Positions 2,365 through 50,959 of a stretch of 64,000 nucleotides of DNA are shown here, one piece after another. The first letter of the stretch is position 1. Every line of letters begins with the position of its first letter. The notes under the pieces are model-generated. The model was not told the DNA's origin. It ran no database searches and worked only from the letters and a program-made list of their open reading frames with translations. Both the position numbers and the translations under genes were made by a program. Source of the stretch: Anaeramoeba ignava BMAN (Eukaryota; Protista; Anaeramoebae); NCBI GenBank assembly GCA_028826165.1, contig JAPDFW010000019.1, positions 1 to 64,000 on the forward strand. The letters are read 5' to 3'.

Positions 2365-5243
2365 ATGATTGGATTTGATTATGAAATTGAAAATTATTTA
2401 AAATTATAAAAATTATCATTATAAAAATAATAAAAAATCAAAATCAAAAATTAAAACAAAATATCCTTTTCCAAAATTGCAAAAAAATCAATTTAATCAA
2501 AATCAAAATCAAAATGAAAAATTTATTTCTTCTTCATTAAATTTAATTCCAATATCAAAAGAACTTCTTAATTCAACTCATCTTCCATTTGGAATATCTA
2601 TTCAACCTTTTGCACAATTTAATCAAAATCAAATTCAAAATCAAAATCAAAATCAAAATCAAAATAAAATTCCAGTTATTGATTTTTCTGAAAATGAACC
2701 AATAATTTGTAGAAGATGTGGAGGATATTTATCACCATTTTCAAAAATTAATGAATTTGAAAATAATTGGGAATGTTCTTTATGCAAAACATTAAATTCA
2801 ATACCTTCTTATTATTTTTCAATTTTAAATCAAAATATTCATCAAATAACTTCAAATCAATTAATTGAAATTATTATTAATTCAAATCAAAATATAAATG
2901 AATTCAAATATTTATTTATTATTGAAAAAACTCAAAAAATGATTGAATCAAATATTTTCAATTTAATTATTTCATCTATTTTAAAAATTATTGAAAATCA
3001 AAATCAAAATCAAAATCAAAATCAATTTAATCAAAATCAATTTAATCAAAATCAAAATCAAAATGATCTGTTTCCAAAAAAACCAAAATGTAAAATTGGA
3101 TTAATTACATTTAATAAATCAATTCAAATTTATAATTTCAATCAAAATTCAAGATTTGAAAGTGAAATTATTACAGATATTGATGATATTTTTATTCCAA
3201 TTCCAGAATCATCAATATTTATTGATATTTATGAAAATGAAGATAATAAAAATAAATTAAAAGAATATTTAAATATAATTATATCTTCTTCTTTAAATGA
3301 AAATGAAAATGATAATAATTTTATTGATGATTATGATAAATCAAATCATTCTTCATTTGGAGTTGCTATTGAATTAGGAAGTTTAATTCTTGTAAATTAT
3401 TTTCATTTTTAAAATTATTTTAAAAATTAAAATAAAAAAATTAAATAAAAAAAAAGCAAAAAAGTGGAGGAAAAATTATCACATTTAATTCAACATTACC
3501 AAATTATGGAAAAGGAAAATTTGATTTAAATTTAAATTCAAATTCAAATCAAAAAGAAAAAGAAAAATTTAATTTTGAAATTGAAAATCAACATTATCAA
3601 AAATTGGAAAATTTTGTTTTGAAAATAAAAATAAAATTGATTCATTTATATTTAGAGAAAATAATATTAATCTTTCAACTTTAAGTATTTATTTTCAAAA
3701 ATAATTCAATTTAATAAATAATTTATTTTATTTATTTTATTTATTTTATTTATTTTATTATTAAAAAACAAAAGTAAAAATGAATGAAATAAGTGGAGGA
3801 AATGTTTATTATTATGATTTTTATAATGGAATCAAAAATTTTCAAAAAAAAAAAAAGAAAAAGAAAGAATTGAAAATGAAATTAAAAAATTAATCAATAA
3901 AGAAGAAGGATTTTTTGTAATTATGAGACTTAGAACAAGTCAAGGTATTTTTATTATTTATTAAAATAATTATCTATTTATTAAAATAAATAAACAAACA
4001 AAGGAATCAAAATATCAAATGTTTTATATGGAATGGATGAAGTTATTATGAATCAAAATTCAGAAATATTTTTACCAACAATAGATTGTGATCAATCAAT
4101 AACATTTCTTTTAGAACATGATTCTCGATTAAAAAATCAAACAAATATTTATATTCAATTTGCAATGATTTATTCAAATAATAAACAAAATAATGAAAAA
4201 AGAAAAAGAAGAATAAGAATATTTAATCTTGAATTGAAAACTTCATCAAATTTAAAAGAAATATTTGAAAAAGCAAATCAAGAAGTTATTATTAGTATTT
4301 TATCAAAAAATACAGCAAAAGAAATCAAAAATTATAAAATTGAAGAAATCAAAAAAAGAATAATTAAAAAATGTGAAAAATAATTGGATTTTATCAACAA
4401 TTTTGTTTTAGATCGAAAAAGAAAAGAAAAGAAAAAGAAAAAACAAATCAAAAATTTCAAACTTCAAAAATTAAAATATTTACCAATTTATTGTTTTGGA
4501 TTATTAAAAATCAACTTTTAGATTCGTATCAATTTTAATTTATTTATTTTATTTATTAATTTGTTAATTAATTTATTAATTTATTTAAAAAACAAAAGAG
4601 AAGAAACAGAAGATAAAATAATTTCAATTATTCTTTATATTAAAACTTCACCAATCCATTTAATTTTAAAATTTCTTTATCAATAATTGAATTTCAAAAT
4701 CAAAATCAAAAATCAAAAATCAAAATGAAAATCAAAAATCAAAATCAAAATCAAAATCAAAATGAAAATCAAAATGAAAATCAATTAATGATATTAAATA
4801 ATTTAAGACTTTCAAGTGGAAGTTTAAAACTTAAAGAAGCATTTTTAATTGATAATGGATTAAATACTATTTTATGGATTGGAAAAAGAAATTTCAAATG
4901 ATTTTTAAAAAGAACATTTAAATATTTCATCAAAAATCAATTAATTGTAAAATCAAAAATCAAATTATTTTTAATTTTTGAATTTTTAAAAATTTTTAAT
5001 TTTATAAAAATAAAAAGGAAAATGAAAATGAAAATGAATGGAATATTTCAAAAACAATCCAAAATTTAATTCAAGAAATTAATAAAGAAAAATTCAAAAA
5101 GAAATTTAAATTTCTCAATAATTCCAAGAAATTCAAAAATGAAAAATTATTTTTAAAATTAATGATTGAAGATAGAACAGGAAAAAGCAAATTCATATAT
5201 TAATTTTTGATTCATTATTAGAAAATAAATATTTTTAAATTAA
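2365..5243 (+). CDS. SEC24: Sec24-like COPII coat subunit (multi-exon, several homopolymer frameshifts)
   Basis: LPFGISIQPFA; zinc finger CRRCGGYLSPF...WECSLCKTLN; trunk KIGLITFN...SGGKIITF; beta-barrel MRLRTSQG and IQFAMIYS...RRIRIFNL; gelsolin-like FLIDNG and terminal MIEDRTG. Introns about 3392-3456, 3685-3774, 3945-4003, 4526-4598, 4947-5016. Start and stop approximate. Confidence 0.8.
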
Positions 5244-5252
5244 ATTAATTTT

Positions 5253-6679
5253 TTAAATGAAATAAGTTTCAAGTTCATCAACAACCCATGAATTATAAGA
5301 ACCAGTTAAATAATTTTTAGCTTCATTTGATCTGGGAGTAATTCCATTAGGAATATTATAATAAACACCAGTATTTGAATAACCAGGTTGTAAATTAGAA
5401 AGTAAATAAATATCATTTCCAAATAATAAACCATAATCTGAATGTGAATAAATTGCATTTTGATTCTTGACCTTTTTAATTGAAAGTTTTTCTGGTTTTC
5501 TATCGTTTTTATCATTTCTTAATGAAAAAATAAATGAATTTGAATCATAAATCCATCTTTTATCTTTTTAAATCCAATTGAAGTAAATCCTCCAAAAATA
5601 TAATTATCTTTGGTTTTGATAATAATTAATGTTTTTCCTTTATCATCACATTTGGAATGCCATTTTTTACAATCAAATCCTTCTTTTTTTGTTGAAAATC
5701 TTAATTTCATTTTGAAAAAGAAATTATCATCATTTATCCATTCTTTTATAAGATTGAAATGTTTTCCTTCTTCAATAATTGTTGATTTAAAATGAAATCT
5801 TGTTTTGAAAATGAATGAATTTTGATTTTCTTTTTCAATAAATTCTTTTAATTCTTTTTCATTTTCTTCTTGAAGTTTTTGGAATTGAATTAATTTTTGT
5901 GAAATTTGATTTGAAATTAAATCTTCTTTCAAAGTATTTTCAAGTTCTTTTTTTGTGAAATCAATAAATCTTATTTTATCAATAAGATTGGAAATTTGAT
6001 TTTTGATTTTTTCTTTTTCTTCTTTTTCAAGTTCTTGATTTTCTTGATTAATATTTGATTTATGTTTTCCCCATTTGATTATTGATTGAAAAATTTCAAT
6101 TTCATTTGTTGGAACAAAATCATTTAGTAAAATTGAATTTAAATGATTTTCTTCAAGTTCAAGAAAAAATGAAGTTTTAATAAATTTTTCAAAATTTTCT
6201 AAAATAAATTTATAAGCAAAATCCAATAATTGATTTAAGTTCATTGATTCAGATAATTTAAGAATATCAACAATAGTTTCAAATTGGAAATTGTTTTTGA
6301 TAAAATTTGAAGAAATTTCAATTAATTCATCAATTAAATATTTTGATGAAAAAATTAAAATTTCAATAGCATTTTCTAAATTAATTTCAATTTTTCCTGA
6401 ATAAAAATAATTTAAAATTAAAAATAGAATTGAACTTGAAACATCTTTCAGAATTAATTTATTTTCTTGATATTCTTTCATTTTAGAATTAAAAAGAGAT
6501 TTAAAATAATAACTTCTTGAAGAAAGAATTGATTTATGAGTTTTAAATGAAGTTTTATTTTGTTCACAAATTATTTCAAAATCAAAATAACTTTCTTCTT
6601 CTTTTTCATTTTTATTTTGATTTTGAAATAAATTTTTTAAATCATTTGAAAGTTTTTCTAAATTTGAATAAGTTTCCAT
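5253..6679 (-). CDS. BTB/POZ-BACK-TLDc protein, copy 1 (one-base deletion in an A-run near 5565)
   Basis: BTB DFEIICE...FKTHKSILSSRSYYFKSLF; BACK EIEIFQSIIKWG; TLDc WHSKCDDKGKTLIIIKTKDNYIFGGFTS. After the frameshift the frame continues to WVVDELETYFI* at 5253. Intronless. Confidence 0.88.
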
Positions 6680-6719
6680 TTTATATAAAAATTTGGAAAA
6701 AGAAAAAAATGAAAAATGA

Positions 6720-7400
6720 AAATTTATTTACAAATTTATTTACAAATTTATTTATAAATTTATTTATAAATTTATTTATTTAAATTTATTTTATTTATTA
6801 AAATTTATTTATAAATTTATTTTAAAAATTTATTTATAAATTTATTTTTAAAATTTATAAATTTATTTTAAAAATTGAAATAAAAATTAATTGAAAAAGT
6901 GGAATAAAATTGAATAAATTTATTTATAAAATTATTTATAAAATTATTTACAAATTTATTTATAAATTTATTTATAAATTTATTTTACAAATTTATTTAT
7001 AAAATTATTTACAAAAAATTTACAAATTTATTTACAAAATTTATTTATAAATTTATTTACAAAATTATTTTAAAAATTAAAATAAAATTAATTGAAAAAG
7101 TGGAATAAAAATTGGAATAAATTTATTTACAAAATTATTTATTTTAAATTTATTTATAAATTTATTTACAAATTTATTTTAAATTTATTTATAAATTTAT
7201 TTTATAAATTTACAAATTTATTTATAAATTTATTTATAAAAATATTTATAAATTTATTTACAAATTCTTACAAATTTATTTACAAATTTATTTACAAATT
7301 TATTTACAAATTTATTTATAAAATTATTTACAAATTTATTTTAAAAATTGAAATAAAAATTAATTGAAAAAGTGGAATAAAAATTGGAATAAAAATTGTG
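6720..7400. repeat. (AAATTTATTTAY)n minisatellite interrupted by three copies of a block containing AAAAAGTGGAATAAAA
   Basis: Blocks near 6895, 7095 and 7368, between divergent genes. Confidence 0.75.
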
Positions 7401-7617
7401 AATTAAATTTTTATTTTAAAAAAAAACTATCATTAAAAATATATATTTTTAAATAGAAATTAAATTAAAATTAAAATTAAAATTAGAAATTGATTAAAAA
7501 TTTTTCCTAATTAAATTTTAATTAAAATAAAAGGGAAAAAAAAATTTAAATTAAAATTTTTTCATTTTTTTTTCTTTTCATTTTTATTTTTATCCCTTTT
7601 TATTTAAAAGATCTATA

Positions 7618-10600
7618 ATGAAAAATAATTTTAATTTTAATTATAATGAAATTGAAAATGAAGAAAGTAATGAAAGCAATAATACAGAACCAATTAATGT
7701 TTGTTTTATTTTATTTTTTGAGTAAATTTCAATTAAAAACTAAAAAATTAAAAAAAAATAGAAAACAATTATAAAAACAGATTTACAAGAAAATTCAATT
7801 AGAACTTTTTCAGAACCAATTTTAAATTCTATAAAAAAATCAATTCTAAAAAAATCAAAAGAAGAAAATAATAACATTATTATTTCAAAAATTATAAATG
7901 AATTATTTAAAAATCAAAATGAAATTGAATTAAAATTTAAAAAGAATGAATTATTTACTTCATTTTTGTAAGTTTTCTTTTTTTAAATTTATTTTAAAAT
8001 TAATTTATTTTTTAATTATTTTTTTTTTAGAAATCAAAATCAAAACGAAAATGAAAATCAAAATGAAAATGAAGAATTTGAAATTAATTCATTTGTTAAA
8101 AACTTTTTTAGTCCAAATTCTATTTTTAAAATTATCAATTTAATTTCTTCAAAAGGATTTAATTTAATTCAAAATTTATTTTTTTCAGAAATGAATGAAA
8201 AAATTTCAATTCAAAAAGAAAAAGAAAAAGAAATAATTTTAAATAGATTTATTCAATTTATTCAAGATCCAATTCAAAAATTAAAAAAAATTCAATTAAA
8301 TCAAAATCAAAATGAAATTGAATTTGAAATTGAAAATGAAATTGAAAATGAATTTGAAAACGAATTTGAAAATGAAAATGAAAATGAAAAATTAATTGTT
8401 TTTGTTTTAATCAAATTTATAATTCCAATTTGTGTAAATGATATGATTTTTTTGGAAATTATAAAAGAAGAAAATGATAAATATCTTGAATTTATAATAC
8501 AAAATATAGATAAATTAGATTATTCAAGAAAAATTCATATTCAAACAATTCAATTACTTTCTTATATTCTTAATTTTATTTATTCAAATTTTCAAGATGA
8601 ATTAATTTTAAATTTGATTAATTTATTCAAAGAAAAATTAAAAAAATTTCCAGAAGAAATAAGAAAAGAAAATATTATTTTGAAAAAAGAAAATATTATT
8701 TTGAAACAAGAAAATAATATTTTAAAACAAGAAACTTATATTTTAAATGTTAATTCTAATTTTTGTAAACTATTTAAATGCTTAAAAAGTTTAAAAGTTT
8801 CAGAAGTTATCGAAAAATTTAATGAAAAATATTTAATAAAAAATCAAGAATATGGAATATTTTATCAACCAAAAAAAATGAAAAAAGAAGGAAAGAATTA
8901 TAAATTTTTAAAAAATGAAGAATATATTAAAGAATATAAAGAAAATTTATTGGAAATTCGAAAAAAACCCAAAAACAAAATTGATTTAATTTTACCACAA
9001 AATCCAAATGATTTAACACCAAGATGGAAATCAGTTTCAATTTATCAAAAAATAAAAGATTTAATAATAGATACTTGCAAAGAATTATCATTTCCAAATT
9101 ATGATGATTATGGATTAAAATTAGAAAATCCAATTAATTTATCCAAACAAATATCAATATCAAAATCTATATCAATATCAACATCATTATCATTATCCAA
9201 ATCAAGTTTAATTTCAAATTCAATTTCAATTCCAAATTTAAATTCAATTTCAAATTCAAAAAATTTTAATGAATATTTAGAAAAAGATCCAAATCAATAT
9301 TCATTTATTCCAATAAACAAAGAAACTAATTTTCAAACTATTAAATCCAAAAAACATTTTGGAGTTTGGATGGATACAAATGATGAACAATATTTATATG
9401 ATTATATTTATCAATATTATGTAATTTAAATTTAAATTTAAAAATAAAAAATTAAAAAATTAAAAATCAAAAATTAAAAAATAGGTTGATGGATATTTAT
9501 TTATTAGTTTACAACCTAAACCAGCACCAATAACAATAATTTATCCAACTTATGATTTAAAAACAAATCAAAAAATATCAGAAAAAGAAGTGAATATTAT
9601 TGTTGATTTTACAATCAAAGTGAAAACTCTTATTCAAGAATTTTGTAGAAATTATGAATTAAAATGCAAAAAAGAAACAGAATATGCATTATATTTAATA
9701 CATTTTAAGAAAAGTATTCATCATATAAAAAGAATATCATTATTTTATCGAGAAGAATTAGAAAAAAAAGAAGAAGAAATAATAATTGAAGATGAAGATG
9801 ATGAATTTAAAAGTGAAGATTTTATTTCTGAAATTGAAGATTTTGTAATTTATGAAGAAGATAATCAAGAAAATGAAAAAAATAAAAATCAAGAAAATGA
9901 AAAAATATATGGAGAAATTACTGAATTAAGTTTATTAGATGAAGAATTAACACTTGCAATTCAAGGAGTTAAATTGGGAACTGTTTTAAAATTACTTCCA
10001 ATTCATAAATCAATTATAGATCCAAATCAATTAAAAAACAAGAATGAAAAAAGAATAGAAATAAATGATAATCCAAATGAAACAAAAATGAAAGAAAAAA
10101 GTAAAAAGAATCCAAAAAAAAATTATTTATTAATTTAATTTATTATTTGTTTTTGAAAAGTTAATGACGAATTAGGATTTTGGGAAGAAATTGGAAATAA
10201 TATTGAAAATATCATTTGGGAAGCAGAAACAAAAGGAAAATATTTATTTGAGAAAATTAGAGGAGCAAGTTTAAATAAATCTATTGAACTTTTAACATCT
10301 AAAAAAGGATTTGCATCAACATTTGTTGATATTTTTTTAGAACTTCTTCCAACAATTACAAATGAAGTTTTATTTATTCAAAAATTATTTGAAAGATATA
10401 ATATTCCAATAGAATTAAAAAAAGAAAATGAAGAAAATATTATTCAAGAAAAAGTTATGGAAGTAATTTGTTATAAGATTGAAATGAATCCTTATCATGT
10501 TTTAAAAGAAGTTAAATCGATGATAAATCATTTTATAAATGAAATTGTTGATAAAAATCAAAATGATAAAATTATAATGAAAGGAAGAAAAATTAAAGAT

Positions 10601-11497
10601 TTATTAGAACATAAAGAAAAAACAAGAAAAAAAACAGTATGGATGACTTATGATAATGATAATGATAATGATAATGATAATGATAAAATAATAAGAAGAA
10701 GAATGAGCAATGAAGAATTTAAATTAGCACCAAAACCTCAAATACCCAAAAATATTGATCCAATGAAAATTCAATTAATGAAAATTAAAGATATTGAAAT
10801 TGCAAGACAAATAACACTTCATACACATAATTTATTCACTAAAATTAAAACACAAGAATTACTTAATCATTCTTGGACAAAGAAAAATAAAAAAGAACTT
10901 AGTCCAAATATTACTTCATTAATTAGAAGATTTAATTATATTTCTGATTGGGTTTCTAGTCAAATTTTAAAAGAAAAGAAAATGAATAAAAGAGTAAAAA
11001 TTATGAAGAAAATGATTCAAATTATTGAAGAGTTATTTTTGATTCGAAATTACAATGATGTAATGTGTTTTGTAGCAGGAATTCAAAATTCATCAATTTC
11101 AAGATTAACAAAAACATGGAAGAAAATACCAAAAAAGATTCGAGAAAGATATGAATATTTCAATTCAATAACAAGTGCATTAGGAGGATTTAAAGAAATG
11201 AGAAATTTAGTTGATTCAGCTGAATTACCAACAATTCCATATCTTGGAGTTTATTTATCAGATTTAACTAATATTGATGAAGTTCCAAATCGAATTGAAA
11301 ATAATTTAATTAATTGGGCTAAAAGAAGAAGAATGTTTGATGTTATTAAGAAAATTAAAAAATTTCAATCAAAAGAATATAATTTTATGTTAATAAGTGA
11401 AATTAAACAATTTTTTGAAAGAGAACCTGTTTTAAATGAAGATCAAATGTGGGAATTATCTTTACAAATTGAAGCTTATCAAGAAGGTCAATTTTAA
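7618..11497 (+). CDS. RasGEF (REM + CDC25 domain) with N-terminal ubiquitin-like/talin-head-like modules; 5 exons
   Basis: Exons 7618-7698, 7762-7967, 8031-9420, 9485-10100, 10161-11497 splice in frame. REM IRGASLNKSIELLT; CDC25 EIARQITL, SPNITSLIRRFNYISDWV, PTIPYLGVYLSDLTNIDE, LINWAKRR. Confidence 0.9.
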
Positions 11498-11878
11498 TTT
11501 TTCTTTTTTATTTTAAATTATTTGAATTATTAAAAAATTAAAAACAACAAATATATTTTATTTTTAATTAAATTATTTTATAATATTTAATTTTATAATT
11601 TAATTTTTCAAAATTATTAAATCGGATAAAAATTTTTTATTAATATTTTTAAATTAAATAATAAAATAATTAATTATTAAATTAGATTATTTTTAATTAA
11701 ATTATTTTAAATTTATTCTATTATTTAATTTAATTATTTATGATTTAATTTTATTATTAATTTTATATTAAAAAAAAATTAAATAAAAAAAATTTTAAAA
11801 AAATTATTTAAATAAGTAAATTTGTTAAAAAAAAAAATAAGAAAAAAAAAATTTTTAATTTAAAATTTTTAATTAAAA

Positions 11879-11952
11879 GGGTGGCTGGCGCAATTGGATA
11901 ACGCGTTAGACTACGGATCTAAAGATTCCAGGTTCAAGTCCTGGGTCACTCG
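11879..11952 (+). tRNA. trnR-ACG: tRNA-Arg (anticodon ACG)
   Basis: Acceptor GGGTGGC/GTCACTC; D arm GCGCAATTGGATAACGC; anticodon arm TTAGA-CTACGGA-TCTAA; T arm CCAGG-TTCAAGT-CCTGG; followed by a poly-T run. Confidence 0.96.
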
Positions 11953-11956
11953 TTAA

Positions 11957-11966
11957 TTTTTTTTTA
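11957..11966 (+). terminator. RNA polymerase III poly-T terminator of tRNA-Arg
   Basis: T-run starting 5 nt after the discriminator base. Confidence 0.7.
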
Positions 11967-11984
11967 TTTAAATTTTTTTTTTTT

Positions 11985-13510
11985 TAATAAATGGAAAGTT
12001 AATAAAATATATAAAATAAAATTATTTTTTAATTTAATTATTTAATATTTTTGATTTTATTTTTGAAATAAATTAATTAAAATATTTTAATAATTATATT
12101 TAATTATTTAGAATAATTTTATATTATTTTGAATAAATGAAATGTTAATAAAATATATAAAATAAAATTAATTCTTAATTTAATTATTTAATATTCTTAA
12201 TTTCATTTTTGAAATAAATTAATTAAAATATTTTAATAATTTTATTTAATTATTTAGAATAATTTTATATTATTTTGAATAAAGAAAAGTTAATAAATTA
12301 TATAAAATAAAATTAATTCTTAATTTAATTATTTAATATTCTTAATTTTATTTTTAAAATAAATTAATTAAAATATTTTAATAAATTTATTTAATTTTTA
12401 GAATAATTTTATATCATTTTGAATAAAAGAAATATTAATAAAATATATAAAATAAAATTAATTCTTAATTTAATTATTTAATATTCTTAATTTCATTTTT
12501 TGAAATAAATTAATTAAAATATTTTAATAATTTTATTTAATTTTTAGAATAATTTTATATTATTTTAAATAAATGAAAAGTTAATAAAATATATAAAATA
12601 AAAATTAATTTTTAATTTAATTATTTAATATTCTTAATTTTATTTTTGAAATAAATTAATTAAAATATTTTAATAAATTTATTTAATCATTTAGAATAAT
12701 TTTATATTATTTTAAATAAAGAAATATTAATAAAATATATAAAATAAAATTAATTCTTAATTTAATTATTTAATATTCTTAATTTTATTTTTGAAATAAA
12801 TTAATTAAAATATTTTAATAAATTTATTTAATTTTTAGAATAATTTTATATTATTTTAAATAAAGAAAAGTTAATAAAATATATAAAATAAAATTATTTT
12901 TAATTTAATTATTTAATATTTTTGATTTTATTTTTGAAATAAATTAGTTAAAATATTTTAATAAATTTATTTAATTTTTAGAATAATTTTATATTATTTT
13001 AAATAAAGAAAAGTTAATAAAATATATAAAATAAAATTAATTTTTAATTTAATTATTTAATATTTTTGATTTTATTTTTGAAATAAATTAATTAAAATAT
13101 TTTAATAATTTTATTTAATTTTTAGAATAATTTTATATTATTTTAAATAAAGAAAAGTTAATAAAATATATAAAATAAAATTAGTTCTTAATTTAATTAT
13201 TTAATATTCTTGATTTTATTTTTGAAATAAATTAATTAAAATATTTTAATAATTTTATTTAATTATTTAGAATAATTTTATATCATTTTGAATAAAGAAA
13301 TATTAATAAAATATAAAATAAAATTAATTCTTAATTTAATTATTTAATATTCTTAATTTTATTTTTGAAATAAATTAATTAAAATATTTTAATAATTTTA
13401 TTTAATTATTTAGAATAATTTTATATTATTTTAAATAAATAGAATGTTAATAAAATATATAAAATAGAATTAGTTCTTAATTTAATTATTTAATATTCTT
13501 GATTTCATTT
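11985..13510. repeat. ~145-bp tandem satellite, about 10.5 copies
   Basis: Anchor ttaataaaatatataaaata recurs near 11999, 12145, 12290, 12435, 12581, 12726, 12871, 13014, 13158, 13302, 13447. Confidence 0.92.
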
Positions 13511-13554
13511 TTTATTTTTTTTTCATTTTTTTCTTTTCCAAATTTTTAAATAAA

Positions 13555-15040
13555 ATGGAAACTTATTTAAATTTAGAAAAACTTTCAAATGATTTAAAAA
13601 ATTTATTTCAAAATCAAAATCAAAATGAAAAAGAAGAAGAAAGTTATTTTGATTTTGAAATAATTTGTGAACAAAATCAAATTTCATTTAAAACTCATAA
13701 ATCAATTCTTTCTTCAAGAAGTGAATATTTTAAATCTCTTTTCAATTCTAAAATGAAAGAATATCAAGAAAATAAATTAATTCTAAAAGATGTTTCAAGT
13801 TCAATTCTATTTCCAATTTTAAATTATTTTTATTCAGGAAAAATTGAAATTAATTTAGAAAATGCAATAGAAATTTTAATTTTTTCATCAAAATATTTAA
13901 TTGATGAATTAATTGAAATTTGTTCAAAATTTATCAAAAACAATTTCCAATTTGAAACTATTGTTGATATTCTTAAATTATCTGAATCAATGAACTTCAA
14001 ATCAATTACTGGATTTTGCTTATAAATTTATTTTAGATAATTTTGAAAAATTTATCAAAACTTCATTTTTTCTTGAACTTGAAGAAAATCATTTAAATTC
14101 AATTTTATCAAATGATTACATTCCAATAAATGAAATTGAAATTTTTCAATCATTAATAAAATGGGGAAAACATAAATCAAATATTAATCAAAAAAATCAA
14201 GAACTTGAAAAAGAAGAAAAAGAAAAAATCAAAAATCAAATTTCCAATATTATTAATAAAATAAGATTTATTGATTTCACAAAAAAAGAACTTAAAGATA
14301 CTTTGAAAGAAGATTTAATTCCAAATCAAATTTCACAAAAATTAATTCAATTCCAAAAACTTCAAAAGAATAAAGAAAAATTAAATCAATTTATTGAAAA
14401 AGAAAATCAAAATTCATTCATTTTCAAATCAAGATTTCATTTCTTAACCGAATCAACAATTATTGAAGAAAAAGAACATTTCAATCTTATAAAAGAATGG
14501 ATAAATGATAATGAATTTTTTTCTAAAATGAAATTAGGATTTTCAACAAAAAAAGAAGGATTTGATTGTAGAAAATGGCATTCCAAATGTGATGATAAAG
14601 GAAAAACATTAATTATTATCAAAACCAAAGATAATTACATTTTTGGAGGATTTACTTCAATTGGATATATAAGTGATAAATCACAATGGTCACACAATTA
14701 TGGAAACAATGGATACATTCCAGATCCAAATTCATTTATTTTTTCATTAAGAAATGATAAAAACGATAGAAAACCAGAGAAATTTCCTACTCAACCCTCT
14801 AAAACAAATTATGCAATTTATTATCATTTACCTTATGGTCCAAATTTTGGAGGAGTAAATGTTTATAAAAGTCATGATATTTGTTTTAATTCTACTTTGA
14901 AATCAGGTGATTCCAATTTTGGGAACACTTATAATCTTCCTAATGGTATTACTTATCAAACAAATGAATCTAAAAATTATTTAGCTGGTTCTTCAATATT
15001 TGATGTTGATGAACTTGAAACTTTTTTCATTTCAAATTAA
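13555..15040 (+). CDS. BTB/POZ-BACK-TLDc protein, copy 2 (one extra A near 14000 splits the ORF)
   Basis: ORFs 13555-14025 and 14303-15040 plus the intervening sequence are colinear with copy 3; the only break is ttcaaatcaa versus ttcaatcaa. Confidence 0.88.
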
Positions 15041-15261
15041 ATTAATTTAAAATTATTTTTCCATTTTTTTTTCGAATTTGATTTATTTTCTTTTACTTTC
15101 AATTAAATAAAATTCTTCAAAATAATAAATTAGAAAAAAAACCAAATTATCACAAAATTCAAATAATTTCAAAAATATGATTAAATAATTATTTAATCCA
15201 AAAACAATGATAATATACAAAAATAAAAATTTGAAATAGAAATTAATAATAATCAAATTTA

Positions 15262-15910
15262 AAATATTAATAAAATATATAAAATAGAATTAATTCTAAA
15301 TTTAATTATTTAATATTTTTAATTTTATTTTTGAAATAAATTAATTAAAATATTTTAATAATTTTATTTAATTTTTTAGAATAATTTTATATTATTTTAA
15401 ATAAAGAAAATTAATAAAATATATAAAATAGAATTAATTTTTAATTTAATTATTTAATATTCTTAATTTTATTTTTGAAATAAATTAATTAAAATATTTT
15501 AATAAATTTTATTTAATTTTTAGAATAATTTTATATTATTTTGAATAAATGGAATATTAATAAAATATATAAAATAGAATTAATTTTTAATTTAAATATT
15601 TAATATTCTTAATTTTATTTTTGAAATAAATTAATTAAAATATTTTAATAATTTTATTTAATTTTTTAGAATAATTTTATATTATTTTAAATAAATGGAA
15701 TATTAATAAAATATATAAAATAAAATTAATTTTTAATTTAATTATTTAATATTCTTAATTTCATTTTTGAAATAAATTAATTAAAATATTTTAATAATTT
15801 TATTTAATTATTTAGAATAATTTTATATTATTTTAAATAAAGAAAAGTTAATAAAATATATAAAATAAAATTAGTTCTTAATTTAATTATTTAATATTCT
15901 TGATTTTATT
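15262..15910. repeat. Second array of the same ~145-bp satellite, about 4.5 copies
   Basis: Same unit as 11985-13510, ending at the same position relative to the next BTB-TLDc start codon. Confidence 0.9.
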
Positions 15911-15955
15911 TTTTATTTTTTTTTCATTTTTTTCTTTTCCAAATTTTTATTTAAA

Positions 15956-17380
15956 ATGAAAACTTATTCAAATTTAGAAAAACTTTCAAATGATTTAAAA
16001 AATTTATTTCAAAATCAAAATCAAAATGAAAAAGAAGAAGAAAGTTATTTTGATTTTGAAATAATTTGTGAACAAAATAAAATTTCATTTAAAACTCATA
16101 AATCAATTCTTTCTTCAAGAAGTTATTATTTTAAATCTCTTTTCAATTCTAAAATGAAAGAATATCAAGAAAATAAATTAATTCTAAAAGATGTTTCAAG
16201 TTCAATTCTATTTCCAATTTTAAATTATTTTTATTCAGGAAAAATTGAAATTAATTTAGAAAATGCAATAGAAATTTTAATTTTTTCATCAAAATATTTA
16301 ATTGATGAATTAATTGAAATTTGTTCAAATTTTATCAAAAACAATTTCCAATTTGAAACTATTGTTGATATTCTTAAATTATCTGAATCAATGGACTTCA
16401 ATCAATTATTGGATTTTGCTTATAAATTTATTTTAGAAAATTTTGAAAAATTTATCAAAACTTCATTTTTTCTTGAACTTGAAGAAAATCATTTAAATTC
16501 AATTTTATTAAATGATTTTATTCCAACAAATGAAATTGAAATTTTTCAATCATTAATAAAATGGGGAAAACATAAATCAAATATTAATCAAGAAAAAGAA
16601 GAAAAAGAAAAAATCAAAAATCAAATTTCCAATATTATTCATAAAATAAGATTTATTGATTTCACAAAAAAAGAACTTGAAAATACTTTGAAAGAAGATT
16701 TAATTCCAAATCAAATTTCACAAAAATTAATTCAATTCCAAAAATTTCAAGAAGAAAATGAAAAAGAATTAAATCAATTTATTGAAAAAGAAAACTTATC
16801 AATTTTCAAATCAAGAATTCATTTTAAATCAACAATTATTGAAGAAAAAGAACATTTCAATCTTATAAAAGAATGGATAAATGATAATGAATTTTTTTCC
16901 AAAATGAAATTAGGATTTTCAACAAAAAAAGAAGGATTTGATTGTAAAAAATGGCATTCCAAATGTGATGATAAAGGAAAAACATTAATTATTATCAAAA
17001 CCAAAGATAATTTTATTTTTGGAGGATTTACTTCAGTTGGATTTAAAAAAGATAAAAGATGGATTTATGATTCAAATTCATTTATTTTTTCATTAAGAAA
17101 TGATAAAAACGATAGAAAACCAGAGAAATTTACAATTAAAAAAGGGAAAGAAGATCATGCAATTTATTCACTTTTATCTAATGGCCCAAATTTTGGAGGA
17201 GTAAATGTTTATAAAAGTTCAGATATTTTCTTTAGCTATGATTTAAAACGTGGTTATTCTAAGTTTGGACGTACTTATAACTTGCCTAATGGAATTGAAC
17301 AAGGCTCAAATCAAGCCAAATTTTATTTAGCTGGTTCTTCAATATTTGATGTTGATGAACTTGAAACTTTTTTCATTTAA
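15956..17380 (+). CDS. BTB/POZ-BACK-TLDc protein, copy 3 (intact, 474 aa)
   Basis: Full ORF with BTB, BACK and TLDc motifs (FIFGGFTS, SFIFSL, GPNFGG, DVDELETFF). Confidence 0.93.
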   Translation: MKTYSNLEKLSNDLKNLFQNQNQNEKEEESYFDFEIICEQNKISFKTHKSILSSRSYYFKSLFNSKMKEYQENKLILKDVSSSILFPILNYFYSGKIEINLENAIEILIFSSKYLIDELIEICSNFIKNNFQFETIVDILKLSESMDFNQLLDFAYKFILENFEKFIKTSFFLELEENHLNSILLNDFIPTNEIEIFQSLIKWGKHKSNINQEKEEKEKIKNQISNIIHKIRFIDFTKKELENTLKEDLIPNQISQKLIQFQKFQEENEKELNQFIEKENLSIFKSRIHFKSTIIEEKEHFNLIKEWINDNEFFSKMKLGFSTKKEGFDCKKWHSKCDDKGKTLIIIKTKDNFIFGGFTSVGFKKDKRWIYDSNSFIFSLRNDKNDRKPEKFTIKKGKEDHAIYSLLSNGPNFGGVNVYKSSDIFFSYDLKRGYSKFGRTYNLPNGIEQGSNQAKFYLAGSSIFDVDELETFFI

Positions 17381-17466: not shown

Positions 17467-18576
17467 ATGGTCGATGAAATAGTTCCAGTTGTAATTCAAA
17501 ACGGTTCAAATACAATCAAAGCAGGATTTGCAGGAGATGATACACCAAACGTAGTTTTCCCATCAATAATTGGAAAACCACGAAATTCAATAGAAAAAAC
17601 GGAAAAAGAATGTTATTTTGGAGAAGAAGCAAAATCCAAAAGAGGAATATTAATGATCAAATATATGATTGAAAACGGAATGATTGTGAATTTTGATGAT
17701 ATGGAAAAAATATGGCATCATACTTTTTATAATGAATTAAGAATTAATCCTGAAGAACATCCACTTTTATTAACTGAATCACCATTGAATCCAAGAGCAA
17801 ATCGAGAGAAAATCACTCAAATCATGTTTGAAACATTCAAAACGCCAGCGTTTTATCTTGAGAATACTTCAGTTCTCTCGCTTTATGCTTCAGGAAGAAA
17901 AACAGGAGTTGTTATTGATTGGAATGATAATATGTATGGAGTTCATCCTGTTTATGAAGGATCTGTTTTGAATCATTCTATTCTTCACTATTTTGTTTCT
18001 GCAAATGATATCACTTTTTATTTAATAAAAATGCTCAATGAAAAAGGTTATTCCTTTCAAACATCTGCTGAATTCGAAATTGTTAAAGATATTCAAGAAA
18101 AATGTTGTTATGTTTCTTTGGATTTTGATAAAGAACTTGATTTGGATGAAAAAATGATCCAAAAAAATTATGAATTACCTAACGGTCAAGTTATCTCAAT
18201 TGGAAATGAAAGGTTTCGTGCTCCTGAAGTGATTTTCAAGCCTTCTTTAATTGGAATGGAACAAGCAAGTGTTTCTGAAACACTTTATAATACAATTCTC
18301 AAATGTGATCACGATATCAGAAAAGAACTTTATGCAAACATTGTTTTATCTGGAGAAAATTCTTTTTTTCCTGGAATTTCGCAAAGATTCGCAAAAGAAA
18401 TTTCTGAGTTTGTTCCTTCTGTTATAAATGTGAACGTGATTTCTCCTGAAAATCAAAATTCAGTTTGGATTGGTGGATCAATTTTTGCTTCTCTTTCTGG
18501 TTTTGTCAATTTATGCATTTCTAAAGATGATTATGAAGATTTTGGACCTTCTCTTATTCACAGAAAATGTTTTTGA
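17467..18576 (+). CDS. Divergent actin / actin-related protein, intronless, 369 aa
   Basis: KAGFAGDDTP, DDMEKIWHHTFYNELR, PEEHPLLLTESPLNP, REKITQIMFETF, ISIGNERFRAPE, SVWIGGSI, IHRKCF; nucleotide-binding loops are altered. Confidence 0.93.
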   Translation: MVDEIVPVVIQNGSNTIKAGFAGDDTPNVVFPSIIGKPRNSIEKTEKECYFGEEAKSKRGILMIKYMIENGMIVNFDDMEKIWHHTFYNELRINPEEHPLLLTESPLNPRANREKITQIMFETFKTPAFYLENTSVLSLYASGRKTGVVIDWNDNMYGVHPVYEGSVLNHSILHYFVSANDITFYLIKMLNEKGYSFQTSAEFEIVKDIQEKCCYVSLDFDKELDLDEKMIQKNYELPNGQVISIGNERFRAPEVIFKPSLIGMEQASVSETLYNTILKCDHDIRKELYANIVLSGENSFFPGISQRFAKEISEFVPSVINVNVISPENQNSVWIGGSIFASLSGFVNLCISKDDYEDFGPSLIHRKCF

Positions 18577-26496: not shown

Positions 26497-29400
26497 TTAA
26501 TTTTGTTTCTTTTGATTTTCTTCTTCTTTGATAAGTAAGTCAATAATTGATTTTTCATTTAATTGATAATAATCTTTAAAATCTTCAAATTCTTCAATAT
26601 TTTGTTCAGTTATTTTTGTTTCATCAAATTTATCATGATAAAAAAAATAAATTAATTGTTGAATTGTTTCAAATGATTTTTCTGAATAATCATGAACTTG
26701 ATTAGATGTATCTTGAACACTTAATAAAAACATTCCTTTAAATAATTCACTTCTTATGAATAAAATTAATTTATGAACTTTAATTTCTTTTTCTTCAATA
26801 ATTATTGTAAAATCTTTTGTTTCATTTTGTTGATATAATTTTCCAAAATCTTCTATTATTCCTTTTCTTCCCTTTTTGGATTCAATCCAATTTGAATCAA
26901 ATCCAACTTCTTTAAATAATTCTGTAACTTTCTTTTCTATTTCATTTAATTTTTCATTTTTCTTTTCATTTTCAAATTTTCTTACTTCCTCTATTTCATT
27001 TAATTTCTTATATTCCTTTTTAAATGTTTCTTTTTGATTTTGATAATTAATTAAATTTTCAAATTTTTGAATCAAATAATCAAAATCACAAAATCCAGTA
27101 TAAAGGAAATTTAATGCATATTCAACATCTTCTTTTGGTTTTTTTTTGCAAATATCCATAAATCTTGTTAAAATTGTTTGATTATTATTAAATCTTGTTA
27201 AAAGAATTAATTTATGAACTTTGAATTCAAAATTATCTTTTGTTTGAATTTTAAAATCTGAAAAATTTTCCTCATTTTCTTTTTTTAAAAAATTATTCAA
27301 ATCTTCATTAAATGAATAAATTTTGTAAAATGATTCAATTATTTCTTTTGGAATTAAATTAAATTTCTCATTTAAATCAAAAATATCTGCTCCATTTATC
27401 AATAATAATTTGATATTTTCAAATGAATATTTATTTCTTCTTTTGATATCTTCTCTTTTTGGAGTCATTGATTGAAAAATTCTAAATGAATATTGATCAA
27501 TATTTCTAAATGAATCTTTATCAATATTTTTGCAAATTAAATGTAAAGGAGTTTCATTTTGATTATTTTTTGAATTAATATCTGTTCCTTTTGAAATCAT
27601 TAATTTAATAATTTCAAATGAGTATTGATTAATATTTTTTTTGCAAATTAAATGTAAAGGAGTTTCATTTTGATTATTTTTTGAATTGATATCTGCTCCT
27701 TTTTCAATCATTAATTTGATAATTTCAAATGAATATTCATTAATAGTTTTGCAAATTAAATGTAAAGGAGTTTTATTTTGATTATTTTTTGAATTAATAT
27801 CTGCTCCTTTTTCAATCATTAATTTAATAATTTCAAATGAATATTGATTTGAATTGGTGGTAAATTTTTGGAAAATTAATTGGAAAGGGGTTTCATTTTG
27901 ATTATTTTTTGAATTAATATCTGCTCCTTTTTCAATTATTAATTTAATAATTTCAAATGAATCTTTATTAATATTTTTGCAAATTAAATGTAAAGGAGTT
28001 TCATTTTGATTATTTTTTGAATTGATATCTGCTCCTTTTTCAATTATTAATTTGATAATTTGAAATGAATATTCATTAGTATCTATAAATGAATAATTAT
28101 AAATATTTTGGAAAATTAAATGTAAAGGAGTTTCATTTTGATTATTTTTTGAATTGATATCTGCTCCTTTTTCAATCATTAATTTAATAATTTCAAATGA
28201 ATATTCATTTGAATAAGTGATAAATTGTTGAAAAATTAAATGTAAAGGAGTTTCTTTTTGATTATTTCTTGAATTAATATCTGCTCCTTTTTCAATCATT
28301 AATTTGATAATTTCAAATGAATATTGATTATTTTTTGAATTGATATTTGCTTGTTTTCCAATCTTCAAATCATTTTCATATGAATAATAATTAATATTTT
28401 TGAAAATTAAATGTAAAGGAGTTTTATTTTGATTATTTTTTGAATTAATATCTGCTCCTTTTTCAATCAACAATTTGATAATTTCAAATGAATATTGATT
28501 ATTTTTTGAATTAATATCTGCTTTTTTTTCAATCTTCAAATCATTTTCAGATAAACCTTCATCTTTATCTTCATCTTCATCTTCATCTTCATATGCATAT
28601 TCATACTCATCTTCATTTGATTTTGTATTTCTGAGAAATTGTTTCAAAGCAAAATCTATCGGTTTTTGTTGATTTTGATAAGTGAAATTAATATAAAAAC
28701 CTTTGGAAATCAATAATTTGATAATTTTCAAAGAAAATTCACTTGGATTTTTGCAACTTAAAGCCATAGAAACAGGATAAATTTGTGGGAATCTATAATG
28801 AATTCTTTTTTTAAAATGTTTTTTTTCTTCTCTCATAATGAGAATTTTCATAATTTTAAATGAATATTCAGCTGGATTTTGGAAAGCAAGATCTAAAGGA
28901 GTTTTAGAATTCTTATTTCTTATATTGATATCTGCTCCTTTTTCAATCATTAATTTAAGAATTTCAAATGAATATTTATTTGGATTTCGGAAAGATAAAT
29001 GTAAAGGAGTTTCATTTTGATTATTTTTTGAATTGATATCTGCTCCTTTTTCAATCATTAATTTAATATTTTCAAATGAATATTGATTAATATTTTTGCA
29101 AGATAAATATAAAGGAGTTTCATTTTGATTATTTTTTGAATTAATATCTGCTCCTTTTTCAATCATTAATTTAATAATTTCAAATGAATATTGATTAATA
29201 TTTTTGCAAGATAAATATAAAGGAGTTTCATTTTGATTATTTTTTGAATTGATATCTGCTCCTTTTTCAATCATGAATTTGATAATTTGAAATGAATATT
29301 CATTAATATCTATAAATGAATAATAATAAATATTTTGGAAAGATAAATGTAAAGGAGTTTCATTTTTATTATTTTTTGAATTAATATCTGCTCCTTTTTC

Positions 29401-32400
29401 GATAATTAATTTGATAATTTCAAGTAATAATTGATTAATATCTCCAAATAAATAATAATTAATCTTTTTGCAAGATAAATGTAAAGGAGTTTCATTTTTA
29501 TTATTTTTTGAATTAATATCTGTTCCTTTTGAAATCAATAACTTGATAAATTCAAATGAATATTGATTAATCTTTTTGCAAGATAAATGTAAAGGAGTTT
29601 CATTTTTATTATTTTTTGAATTGATATCTGCTCCTTTTTCAATCATGAATTTAATAATTTCAAATAAATTTTGATTTGGATTTGTGATAAATTTTTGGAA
29701 AATTAAATGTAAAGGAGTTTCATTTTGATTATTTTTTGAATTGATATCTGTTCCTTTTTCAATCAAGAATTTAATAATTTCAAATGAATCTTTATCAATA
29801 TTTTTGCAAATTAAATGTAAAAGAGTTTCATTTTGTTTATTTTTTAAATTGATATCTGCTCCTTTTTCAATCATTAATTTAATAATTTCAAATAAATTTT
29901 GATTTGAATTGGTGGTAAATTTTTGGAAAATTAAATGTAAAAGAGATTCATTTTGATTATTTTTTGAATTGATATCTGTTCCTTTTTCAATCATAAATTT
30001 AATAATTTCAAATGAATCTTTATTAATATTTTTGCAAATTAAATGTAAAGGAGTTTCATTTTGATTATTTTTTGAATTGATATCTGCTCCTTTTTCAATC
30101 AATAATTTGATAATTTCAAATGAATATTGATTAATATTTTTGCAAGATAAATGTAAAGGAGTTTCATTTTTATTATTTTTTGAATTGATATCTGCTCCTT
30201 TTTGAATCATGAATTTAATAATTTCAAATAAATCTTGATTTGGATTCGTGATAAATTTTTGGAAAATTAAATGTAAAGGAGTTTCATTTTGTTTATTTTT
30301 TGAATTGATATCTGCTCCTTTTTCAATCATGAATTTGATAATTTCAAATGAATCTTTATTAATATTTTTGCAAAATAAATGTAAAGGAGTTTCATTTTGA
30401 TTATTTTTTGAATTGATATCTGCTCCTTTTTGGATCATGAATTTGATAATTTGAAATGAATATTGATTAATATATTTACAAGATAAATGGAAAGGAGTTT
30501 CATTTTTATTATTTTTTGAATTGATATCTGCTCCTTTTTCAATCAATAATTTAATAATTTCAAATAAATTTTGATTTGGATTTGTGATAAATTTTTGGAA
30601 AATTAATTGGAAAGGGGTTTCATTTTGTTTATTTTTTGAATTGATATCTGCTCCTTTTTCAATCATGAATTTAATAATTTCAAATGAATCTTTATCAATA
30701 TTTTTGCAAATTAAATGTAAAAGAGTTTCATTTTGTTTATTTTTTAAATTGATATCTGCTCCTTTTTCAATCATTAATTTAATAATTTCAAATAAATTTT
30801 GATTTGAATTGGTGGTAAATTTTTGGAAAATTAAATGTAAAAGAGATTCATTTTGATTATTTTTTGAATTGATATCTGTTCCTTTTTCAATCATGAATTT
30901 AATAATTTCAAATGAATCTTTATTAATATTTTTGCAAATTAAATGCAAAGGAGTTTCATTTTTATTATTTTTTGAATTGATATCTGCTCCTTTTTCAATC
31001 AATAATTTGATAATTTCAAATGAATCTTTATCAATATTTTTGCAAGATAAATGTAAAGGAGTTTCATTTTTATTATTTTTTGAATTGATATCTGCTCCTT
31101 TTTGGATCATGAATTTAATAATTTCAAATAAATCTTGATTTAGATTTGTGATAAATTTTTGGAAAACTAATTGGAAAGGGGTTTCATTTTGATTATTTTT
31201 TGAATTGATATCTGTTCCTTTTTCAATCATAAATTTGATAATTTCAAATGAATCTTTATTAATATTTTTGCAAAATAAATGTAAAGGAGTTTCATTTTGA
31301 TTATTTTTTGAATTGATATCTGCTCCTTTTTCAATCTTGAATTTGATAATTTCAAATGAATCTTTATTAATATTTTTGCAAGATAAATGTAAAGGAGTTT
31401 CATTTTTATTATTTTTTGAATTGATATCTGCTCCTTTTTCAATCATGAATTTAATAATTTCAAATGAATCTTTATTAATATTTTTGCAAATTAAATGTAA
31501 AGGAGTTTCATTTTGATTATTTTTTGAATTGATATCTGCTCCTTTTTCAATCATGAATTTAATAATTTCAAATAAATTTTGATTTGGATTTGTGATAAAT
31601 TTTTGGAAAACTAATTGGAAAGGAGTTTCATTTTGATTATTTTTTGAATTGATATCTGCTCCTTTTTGAATCATGAATTTGATAATTTGAAATGAATATT
31701 TATTAATATTTTTGCAAATTAAATGTAAAGGAGTTTCATTTTGATTATTTTTTGAATTGATATCTGCTCCTTTTTCAATCATGAATTTGATAATTTCAAA
31801 TGAATCTTTATTAATATTTTTGCAAAATAAATGTAAAGGAGTTTCATTTTGATTATTTTTTGAATTGATATTTGCTCCTTTTTCAATCATGAATTTGATA
31901 ATTTCAAATAAATCTTGATTTAGATTTGTGATAAATTTTTGGAAAACTAATTGGAAAGGAGTTTCATTTTTATTATTTTTTGAATTGATATCTGCTCCTT
32001 TTTCAATCAATAATTTGATAATTTGAAATGAATATTGATTAATATTTTTGCAAAATAAATGTAAAGGAGTTTCATTTTTATTATTTTTTGAATTGATATC
32101 TGCTCCTTTTTCAATCATGAATTTAATAATTTCAAATAAATCTTGATTTGGATTTGTGATAAATTTTTGGAAAACTAATTGGAAAGGGGTTTCATTTTGA
32201 TTATTTTTTGAATTGATATCTGCTCCTTTTTGAATCATGAATTTGATAATTTCAAATGAATATTTATTAATATTTTTGCAAATTAAATGTAAAGGAGTTT
32301 CATTTTGATTATTTTTTGAATTGATATCTGCTCCTTTTTCAATCAATAATTTGATAATTCCAAATGAGTATTGATTTGGATAGCCACAGCTTAGAAATAA

Positions 32401-50500: not shown

Positions 50501-50959
50501 TCAAGCCGACCCAAAGTTAACGGTACAACAGTCCTGTCTCTGCTCTATGAACCTTTTCTCCCTTCACATTACTACTACGCTCCCTTGTCTCTCTTTGTAC
50601 GTTTCTGTCTCGTTGCCGTTGCTGTGCTGATCACAAACTCGGCAGTTCGAACCTTTGTTATTTCCCTATTTTGCGTACTTTTTCTTTCCTTTAATCTTCT
50701 AACTCGTCCCTTTGTCTCTTCTTACGCTAACTGGCTGAACACAGCCACTCTTTCTGTCCTTTGTCTTGCTGCTGGGCTTGGCATGATCCATGCTTCTTGG
50801 CAATTCAGTGGTTTGATGCCGTATCTTGGCCCAATCAAAAATTATGGTTATGGTCTTGATTATTCAATTTTGTCATTATGTTCAGCTCTTTTTCTTTATT
50901 TTCTTTTTAGGTATGTTCGCCTCTTTGCCAGACATCGCCATTGTTTCGGTTGTAAGTAA
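47511..50959 (+). CDS. Cell-surface multipass membrane protein: signal peptide, pectin-lyase-like/Pmp-type beta-helix, Cys-rich linker, multiple TM helices
   Basis: 8-nt first exon ATGAAAAA plus intron 47519-47580 gives MKKISLICILIILV; FxxN...GG(A) repeats; CEPCAAGTFS, CPVDYC, NRTGLICTECAAGF; hydrophobic C-terminal segments flanking an acidic Ser-rich loop. Confidence 0.85.

Follow-up and report, generated by a model that had tools for sequence, protein, structure and literature searches.

The first 64,000 nucleotides of a contig of Anaeramoeba ignava BMAN (the window, G000:C21:1-64000, in a genome assembly of 42.8 Mb and 147 contigs) contain three related genes, here called copies 1, 2 and 3, whose products join a BTB-BACK module to a C-terminal TLDc domain. 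They raise the question of why TLDc, elsewhere a conserved domain that binds V-ATPase (an ATPase of vacuolar type), should be so different from one neighboring copy to the next in its second half. The answer that we favor, with somewhat better than even confidence, is that the three genes belong to a lineage-specific germline repertoire of several hundred BTB-BACK-TLDc proteins, each probably with a different binding partner.

A preliminary description of this DNA dealt with three genes, a scale overturned by genome searches with copy 3 and with the TLD and BACK models, in which the family runs to hundreds. Copy 3 has at least 95 matches, mostly at 68-87% identity (90 scored of 1154 candidates), the TLD model yields 556 candidates, with all 150 of those scored exceeding the cut-off, and the BACK model yields 539. 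From these counts, a genome-wide family of several hundred genes is estimated; the figure is an estimate because not every TLDc gene has the BTB-BACK-TLDc layout. Most scored copies are intact, and broken copies accompany the lineage-specific expansion, as in the MATH-BTB and F-box repertoires. The close protein matches are all from A. ignava (M0811 tags), and TLDc matches outside Anaeramoeba are only 33-41% identical in a search covering proteins near the query in length. In the ESM Atlas, the BTB-BACK-TLDc layout recurs in many uncharacterized arthropod clusters and BTB-TLDc in Mucoromycota, diatoms and rotifers, the BTB-TLD-BACK domain set being present in 16 of 30 matches; these many clusters, like the ciliate TLD expansions, have the same or a similar layout. 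A literature search found no paper on BTB-TLDc families or on the function of their arthropod, fungal, diatom or rotifer clusters, and the main text of the A. ignava genome paper mentions neither this family, TLD nor ubiquitin. Elsewhere in the genome, one 870-amino-acid open frame (G000:C104:866780-868927, minus strand) holds four tandem TLDc domains, and one family member lies within a 1172-amino-acid open frame (G000:C13:627868-629340, plus strand), a possible fusion.

The copies had been described as near-identical through BTB-BACK and the first half of TLDc and divergent thereafter, and amino-acid identities agree with this. Between pairs of window copies, identity is 0.91-0.96 across BTB and BACK, 0.81-0.85 across the linker and 0.89-0.96 across the N-terminal half of TLDc, in contrast to 0.60-0.68 across the C-terminal half (part of the further analysis masked the five final codons of copy 1). 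Among 31 close copies, picked for similarity to copy 3 and used for the DNA-level tests, mean amino-acid identity is 0.90 in BTB, 0.79 in BACK, 0.73 in the linker, 0.72 in the N-terminal half of TLDc and 0.57 in the C-terminal half. Across 114 paralogues, 23 positions of the C-terminal half exceed 2.5 bits, as against 2 of the N-terminal half, and each of four loops occurs in 103-107 distinct sequences. In many cases a hypervariable site is one position within an otherwise invariant motif (e.g., codon 412 in G-P-x-F-G, 3.7 bits; codon 425 in D-F-x-L, 3.8 bits; codon 439 after F-G, 3.6 bits), and the fold-defining glycines and C-terminal glutamate motif of TLDc are invariant. This contrast of 23 hypervariable sites with 2, in a fold that is kept, bears out the earlier proposal that TLDc serves as a variable scaffold. 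The variable residues of the C-terminal half are rich in Tyr (15%), Asn (15%), Gly (8%) and Ser (7%). Aromatic residues and His have a share of 0.22 of its variable sites, 0.01 of those in the N-terminal half and 0.16 of six sites in BTB, BACK and the linker, and Lys, Glu and Gln, which make up most of the N-terminal variable sites (0.58), have a share of 0.15 in the C-terminal half.

Codon models point to selection at these positions to a degree that depends on the model. For variable sites that had been identified in 88 independent proteins, the ratio of replacement to silent substitution rates (omega) is 1.6-1.7 under MG94 (best by the Akaike information criterion; twice the log-likelihood difference, 2dL, 18-31) and 3.4-3.5 under a mutation-selection model of poorer fit. 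Sites with omega above 1 make up 20% of the C-terminal half of TLDc and 8.5% of the BTB-BACK control under MG94, and 28% and 9%, respectively, under the mutation-selection model, an excess not seen under F61 or F3x4. In the young pair L008/L015, the C-terminal half has 17 replacement and 1 silent codon differences, and the AT-to-GC rate at variable codons is 2.6 times the fourfold rate (11 columns, noisy). Diversifying selection on sites of the C-terminal half is likely, albeit model-dependent. A simpler history of birth-and-death drift, in which an easily duplicated gene with unconstrained TLDc loops undergoes ordinary conversion and forms no recognition repertoire, would suit the omega values below 1 under F61 and F3x4, the many frameshifted copies, and the silent divergence that is itself raised about 2.9-fold in the 3′ part. 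It fits poorly with variable sites that include single positions within invariant motifs and not loops alone, and with their composition, as codon positions 1-2 of the variable sites are 29% GC, whereas their third positions (7.8%), fourfold sites (4.3%) and intergenic DNA (about 6%) stand at a neutral level of 4-8%. Furthermore, omega in the TLDc framework is 0.06-0.27 and, as noted above, most scored copies are intact; we regard drift as an improbable explanation of the whole pattern.

The conserved N-terminal part is the one that would link these proteins to a ubiquitin ligase. Its BTB-BACK end matches KLHL22, KBTBD4, KLHL11 and SPOP (E 5e-18 to 5e-13), with BTB followed by BACK as in known adaptors, and an M-K-E motif within BTB (codons 67-69 of the gene) is invariant in the 31 copies and sits where Cullin-3 adaptors have their hydrophobic-x-Glu motif. 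The homology and the invariant motif support the Cullin-3-type adaptor module of the earlier proposal, and the BTB-BACK end probably dimerizes and docks on a Cullin-3-type ligase; the genome has about 8 cullin loci, counted at the level of the cullin family. These two features are shared with the KLHL, KBTBD and SPOP proteins, and the A. ignava proteins differ from that group in having a C-terminal TLDc domain, not Kelch, and in their hundreds of copies. Matches of protein A to the profile were dismissed as spurious.

An alignment-based AlphaFold2 model of the TLDc domain (predicted local distance difference test 94) matches NCOA7, OXR2, Skywalker, mEAK-7 and Oxr1 in Foldseek (E 4e-10 to 3e-5, probability 1.0). 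With OXR1, NCOA7, mEAK-7, TBC1D24 and yeast Oxr1 and Rtc5 the family shares the TLDc fold, the invariant glycines and the glutamate motif; those proteins are few and are conserved V-ATPase binders, whereas in A. ignava the stretches that align with the contacts to subunits E and A rank among the most variable. In mEAK-7, subunits A and E are touched by P316, Q317, Y341, T354, Y367 and K384 (PMC9263379), and in a weak phmmer alignment (E = 0.005) these residues fall inside stretches of ~3-3.5 bits or at most two residues away, with conserved E- and A-subunit contact residues of the mEAK-7 type not recovered in it. In mEAK-7 the A and E contacts belong to a single interface, so the variable stretches probably lie together on one side of the domain, the probable partner-binding face, and the canonical V-ATPase-binding face seems to have become a variable surface, although some docking on V-ATPase may persist. 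The B-subunit contact of mEAK-7, G276/H277, aligns to G327-F328, of which F328 is kept in 112 of 114 copies and G327, which by motif is also G815 of NCOA7, in all; G815 is required for V-ATPase binding (PMC8608904), and the glycine loop of TLDc V-ATPase regulators is thus kept.

A Gly327 invariant in 114 copies would be expected of diversified regulators of host machinery, in which the Gly-Phe loop still docks on V-ATPase or other endomembrane complexes, the proteins acting either at the phagosome or symbiosome or else in the manner of decoys, and a variable rim tunes or shields the contact; phagosome-maturation genes are, moreover, expanded in Anaeramoeba (PMC11550330). A conserved target, however, leaves hundreds of different binding faces unexplained, the V-ATPase A/B and E subunits have only ~3 loci each, and canonical-looking TLDc genes exist apart from the family (L031, L032), so this explanation also appears unlikely. 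The same subunit counts led us to reject co-expansion with V-ATPase subunits. Hypervariable faces are likewise at odds with a dosage expansion of an oxidative-stress protector, which predicts uniform copies and needs no BTB-BACK module. Dosage has a precedent in the symbiont-bearing ciliates Paramecium bursaria and Tetrahymena utriculariae, whose TLD expansions were interpreted as oxidative-stress tolerance (PMC11834939), and the present host is an anaerobe; even so, we give it very little credence.

How the copies came to differ can be read in part from the mosaic structure of copy 3. As the preliminary description stated, the three copies form a patchwork: after a segment of copy-2 type (Table 1), copy 3 is identical to the copy-1 type at 84/84 nucleotides over codons 362-389, with the same 30-nucleotide shorter loop, and is again of copy-2 type at codons 408-424 and 456-469, with a common 21-nucleotide insertion and 3-nucleotide deletion. 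Only 6 of 192 proteins have the loop-4 insertion type; two of them, L008 and L015 on contig C130, are not part of the BTB-BACK clade (support 100%) that unites the window copies. All four combinations are seen both of short loop 1 with loop-4 type and of BTB-BACK clade with loop-4 type, patterns that need at least two exchanges. A GENECONV-like scan marks a tract at codons 363-390 (global p<0.002). Silent differences jump in the 3′ part from 1.2% to 34% in the pair L004/L021 (C46; p=1e-5) and from 1.5% to 20% in L007/L017 (C133; p=0.003), both after a regional correction for the 2.9-fold family-wide rise of silent divergence there, and no such jump is seen in the pairs copy 1/L002 and L008/L015. 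Gene conversion is upheld by the shared-indel mosaic, the tract and the silent-site excess in the two pairs. The claim that TLDc is shuffled by conversion stands for blocks reshuffled in some pairs, but most of the variation consists of point substitutions and altered loop lengths at a fixed set of sites. A codon-level runs test on point substitutions alone found no significant mosaic among the three window copies (p=0.15-0.2), so it is the indels in common and the long stretches of identity that carry the case for the window mosaic. A runs test at the nucleotide level (p=0.00015) was set aside, its signal being inflated by codon changes of more than one base, and cross-partition approximately unbiased (AU) tests, being biased toward their own partition's tree, were not used as proof. 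Overall, conversion looks to be mainly a homogenizer of BTB-BACK among neighbors, with occasional block swaps and no programmed shuffling. Diversity-generating retroelements also place variable residues in a fixed scaffold, and the Asn- and Tyr-rich sites recall them; here, in contrast, the diversity is spread over many germline copies, changes at variable codons are not adenine-specific and third positions vary too, and a mechanism of that kind was rejected on these grounds.

The three genes had been presented as intronless paralogues. All three are real, and set against 28 intact paralogues from the genome none contains an insertion of intron size, but copy 3 alone is an intact open reading frame (ORF). 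In comparison with L002, its near-identical twin, copy 1 lacks one A and has two further, mutually compensating A-run indels. As a result of the latter pair, the loop string KKVKNQN quoted earlier for copy 1 is an out-of-frame reading of KKGQES, produced by a double frameshift; the strings quoted for copies 2 and 3 were found as given. All four indels of copies 1 and 2 lie in A-runs, which suggests assembly error: those of copy 1 may be homopolymer errors or real decay, with their location favoring the former. The public model P0002 of copy 2 omits 38 amino acids across the frameshift, over which it probably invents an intron. Automatic names such as 'pep-cterm sorting domain-containing protein' are misleading, as the proteins so named are BTB-BACK-TLDc proteins. 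More single or compensating frameshifts in paralogues (L011, G000:C33, codons 391-397; the L008, L015 and L022 neighbors) suggest that homopolymer errors or decay are common across the family. The homopolymer indels show that local assembly is imperfect, and the local mosaic might by the same token be an assembly or polishing chimera between paralogues. The same pattern in unlinked pairs on C46 and C133, and the unique sequence of copy 3 on the 3′ side of the tract (59/93 nucleotides to copy 2), make such a chimera highly implausible, and the family-wide hypervariability would be unaffected by it.

In the favored reading, the near-constant BTB-BACK end would form a dimer and dock on a Cullin-3-type ligase, as its homology implies; the TLDc fold is kept, and about 20-25 positions and loops, probably on the partner-binding face, vary from copy to copy. 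Each cytosolic copy would then bind a different protein and hand it over for ubiquitination. Tandem and segmental duplication, with fast amino-acid and loop-length change at these sites, supplies the diversity, selection likely acts on the variable sites, and gene conversion appears to even out BTB-BACK among neighbors and sometimes swaps TLDc blocks, as in copy 3. Several results weigh against this reading. Site-wise dN/dS, which the preliminary description put forward as a check, gave a divided answer: omega at the variable sites exceeds 1 under MG94 and the mutation-selection model, but falls to 0.73-0.81 with F3x4 and F61, the latter also giving no significant preference for M8 over M8a. 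M2a beats M1a in every region, BTB-BACK included (2dL 60-69), and the BTB-BACK control also passes M2a/M8, which shows an inflation of these tests, with recombination and AT bias as its probable causes. Histories along the gene are incompatible, as in conversion-diversified families, but the formal tests are weak: the pairwise homoplasy index is significant for the whole gene only (p=0.008) and not within partitions, monophyly of the window copies survives a constrained-tree AU test for the 3′ part (p=0.07), and the window pairs alone are marginal (p=0.04-0.3). Finally, the surface mapping comes from the weak sequence alignment to mEAK-7, the glycine contacting the V-ATPase B subunit is invariant across copies, two of the three local copies are frameshifted as assembled, and a search for RNA runs covering the region found none.

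Within the window (Table 1), a similar 146-bp repeat unit precedes both copy 2 and copy 3, which marks these two as a tandem duplication. Copy 1 and its twin on C76 are 92.6% identical over 3.6 kb with flanks, and their amino-acid identity is 95-98% in every region; the duplicated flanks on C76 may represent a segmental duplicate or a second haplotype. Sec24-like gene pieces (2477-4383, plus strand) lie tail-to-tail with copy 1, a multi-exon RasGEF gene (8191-11497, plus strand) separates copies 1 and 2, and a divergent, intronless actin-family gene (17467-18576, plus strand) begins 86 bp past copy 3. Further along, a 2222-amino-acid ORF (26497-33165, minus strand) combines many ankyrin repeats with a BTB domain at its C-terminus and is a possible further Cul3-type adaptor. 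A 1123-amino-acid ORF (47588-50959, plus strand) with only a weak DUF7630 match lies where GC content is unusually high (44% at 48-50 kb) and is possibly a lateral transfer or a surface protein.

Table 1. The BTB-BACK-TLDc copies of the window and their parts; positions count from the first nucleotide of the window.
Feature	Position	Strand	Remarks
Copy 1, BTB-BACK-TLDc	5253-6679	-	Broken frame as assembled; intact near-identical twin L002 (G000:C76)
Three single-base A-run indels, copy 1	about 5565-5569, 5473-5477, 5458-5461	-	By comparison with L002; one A missing at the first, the other two compensating
146-bp AT-rich tandem repeat	11981-13512		10.6 copies; upstream of copy 2
Copy 2, BTB-BACK-TLDc	13555-15040	+	One extra A at about 13999-14001
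146-bp tandem repeat, similar unit	15263-15913		4.5 copies; upstream of copy 3
Copy 3, BTB-BACK-TLDc	15956-17380	+	Single intact intronless ORF, 474 amino acids
BTB domain (PF00651), copy 3	16031-16345	+	Codons 26-130
BACK domain (PF07707), copy 3	16364-16591	+	Codons 137-212
TLDc domain (PF07534), copy 3	16826-17365	+	Codons 291-470; profile score 80.4 bits, cut-off 24.5
Copy-3 segment of copy-2 type	16829-16945	+	Codons 292-330; 116/117 nucleotides to copy 2, 104/117 to copy-1 twin L002
Conversion tract, copy 3	16949-17122	+	Codons 332-389; 172/174 nucleotides to L002, including short loop 1
Hypervariable loop 1, copy 3	17045-17068	+	Codons 364-371; length 6-24 amino acids family-wide
Hypervariable positions and loops, TLDc C-terminal half, copy 3	17138-17305	+	Codons 395-450, between invariant motifs
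Loop-4 insertion type	17177-17227	+	In copies 2 and 3 and C130 paralogues L008/L015; not in copy 1

Among known systems, the closest kind is that of the diversifying MATH-BTB and F-box adaptors, in which the cullin-binding end stays constant and the substrate end changes fast. The A. ignava family resembles them in its conserved, putatively cullin-docking end, its hypervariable putative substrate end and its large, unstable membership; it differs in having TLDc where they have MATH or FBA/FTH, in its host, which is a single-celled metamonad, and in its evident conversion. For nematodes and plants, such families are described as large, unstable and subject to birth and death, with pathogen defense hypothesized on indirect evidence (PMC1866355). 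By analogy, the targets of the A. ignava proteins are most likely foreign or fast-evolving cytosolic proteins, such as bacterial effectors or viral proteins. A fully immune-like ubiquitin-ligase repertoire, in which the V-ATPase-binding face would now act like an antibody in recognizing proteins of symbionts, prey or viruses and would be diversified by selection and block exchange, is a more tentative proposal, to which we assign clearly less than even probability.

What is new is the TLDc scaffold, here in a protist with symbionts. The family suggests that a conserved V-ATPase-binding domain could serve as a hypervariable recognition scaffold, in effect a small, stable fold carrying a natural binder library, and, in a protist whose bacteria live in a symbiosome, it is a candidate means of symbiont control or of cell-autonomous immunity. 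The TLD expansions of other symbiotic protists may also be open to another reading: if the immune-like proposal is true, the TLDc expansions of ciliates, fungi and arthropods would be recognition families rather than cases of oxidative-stress dosage.

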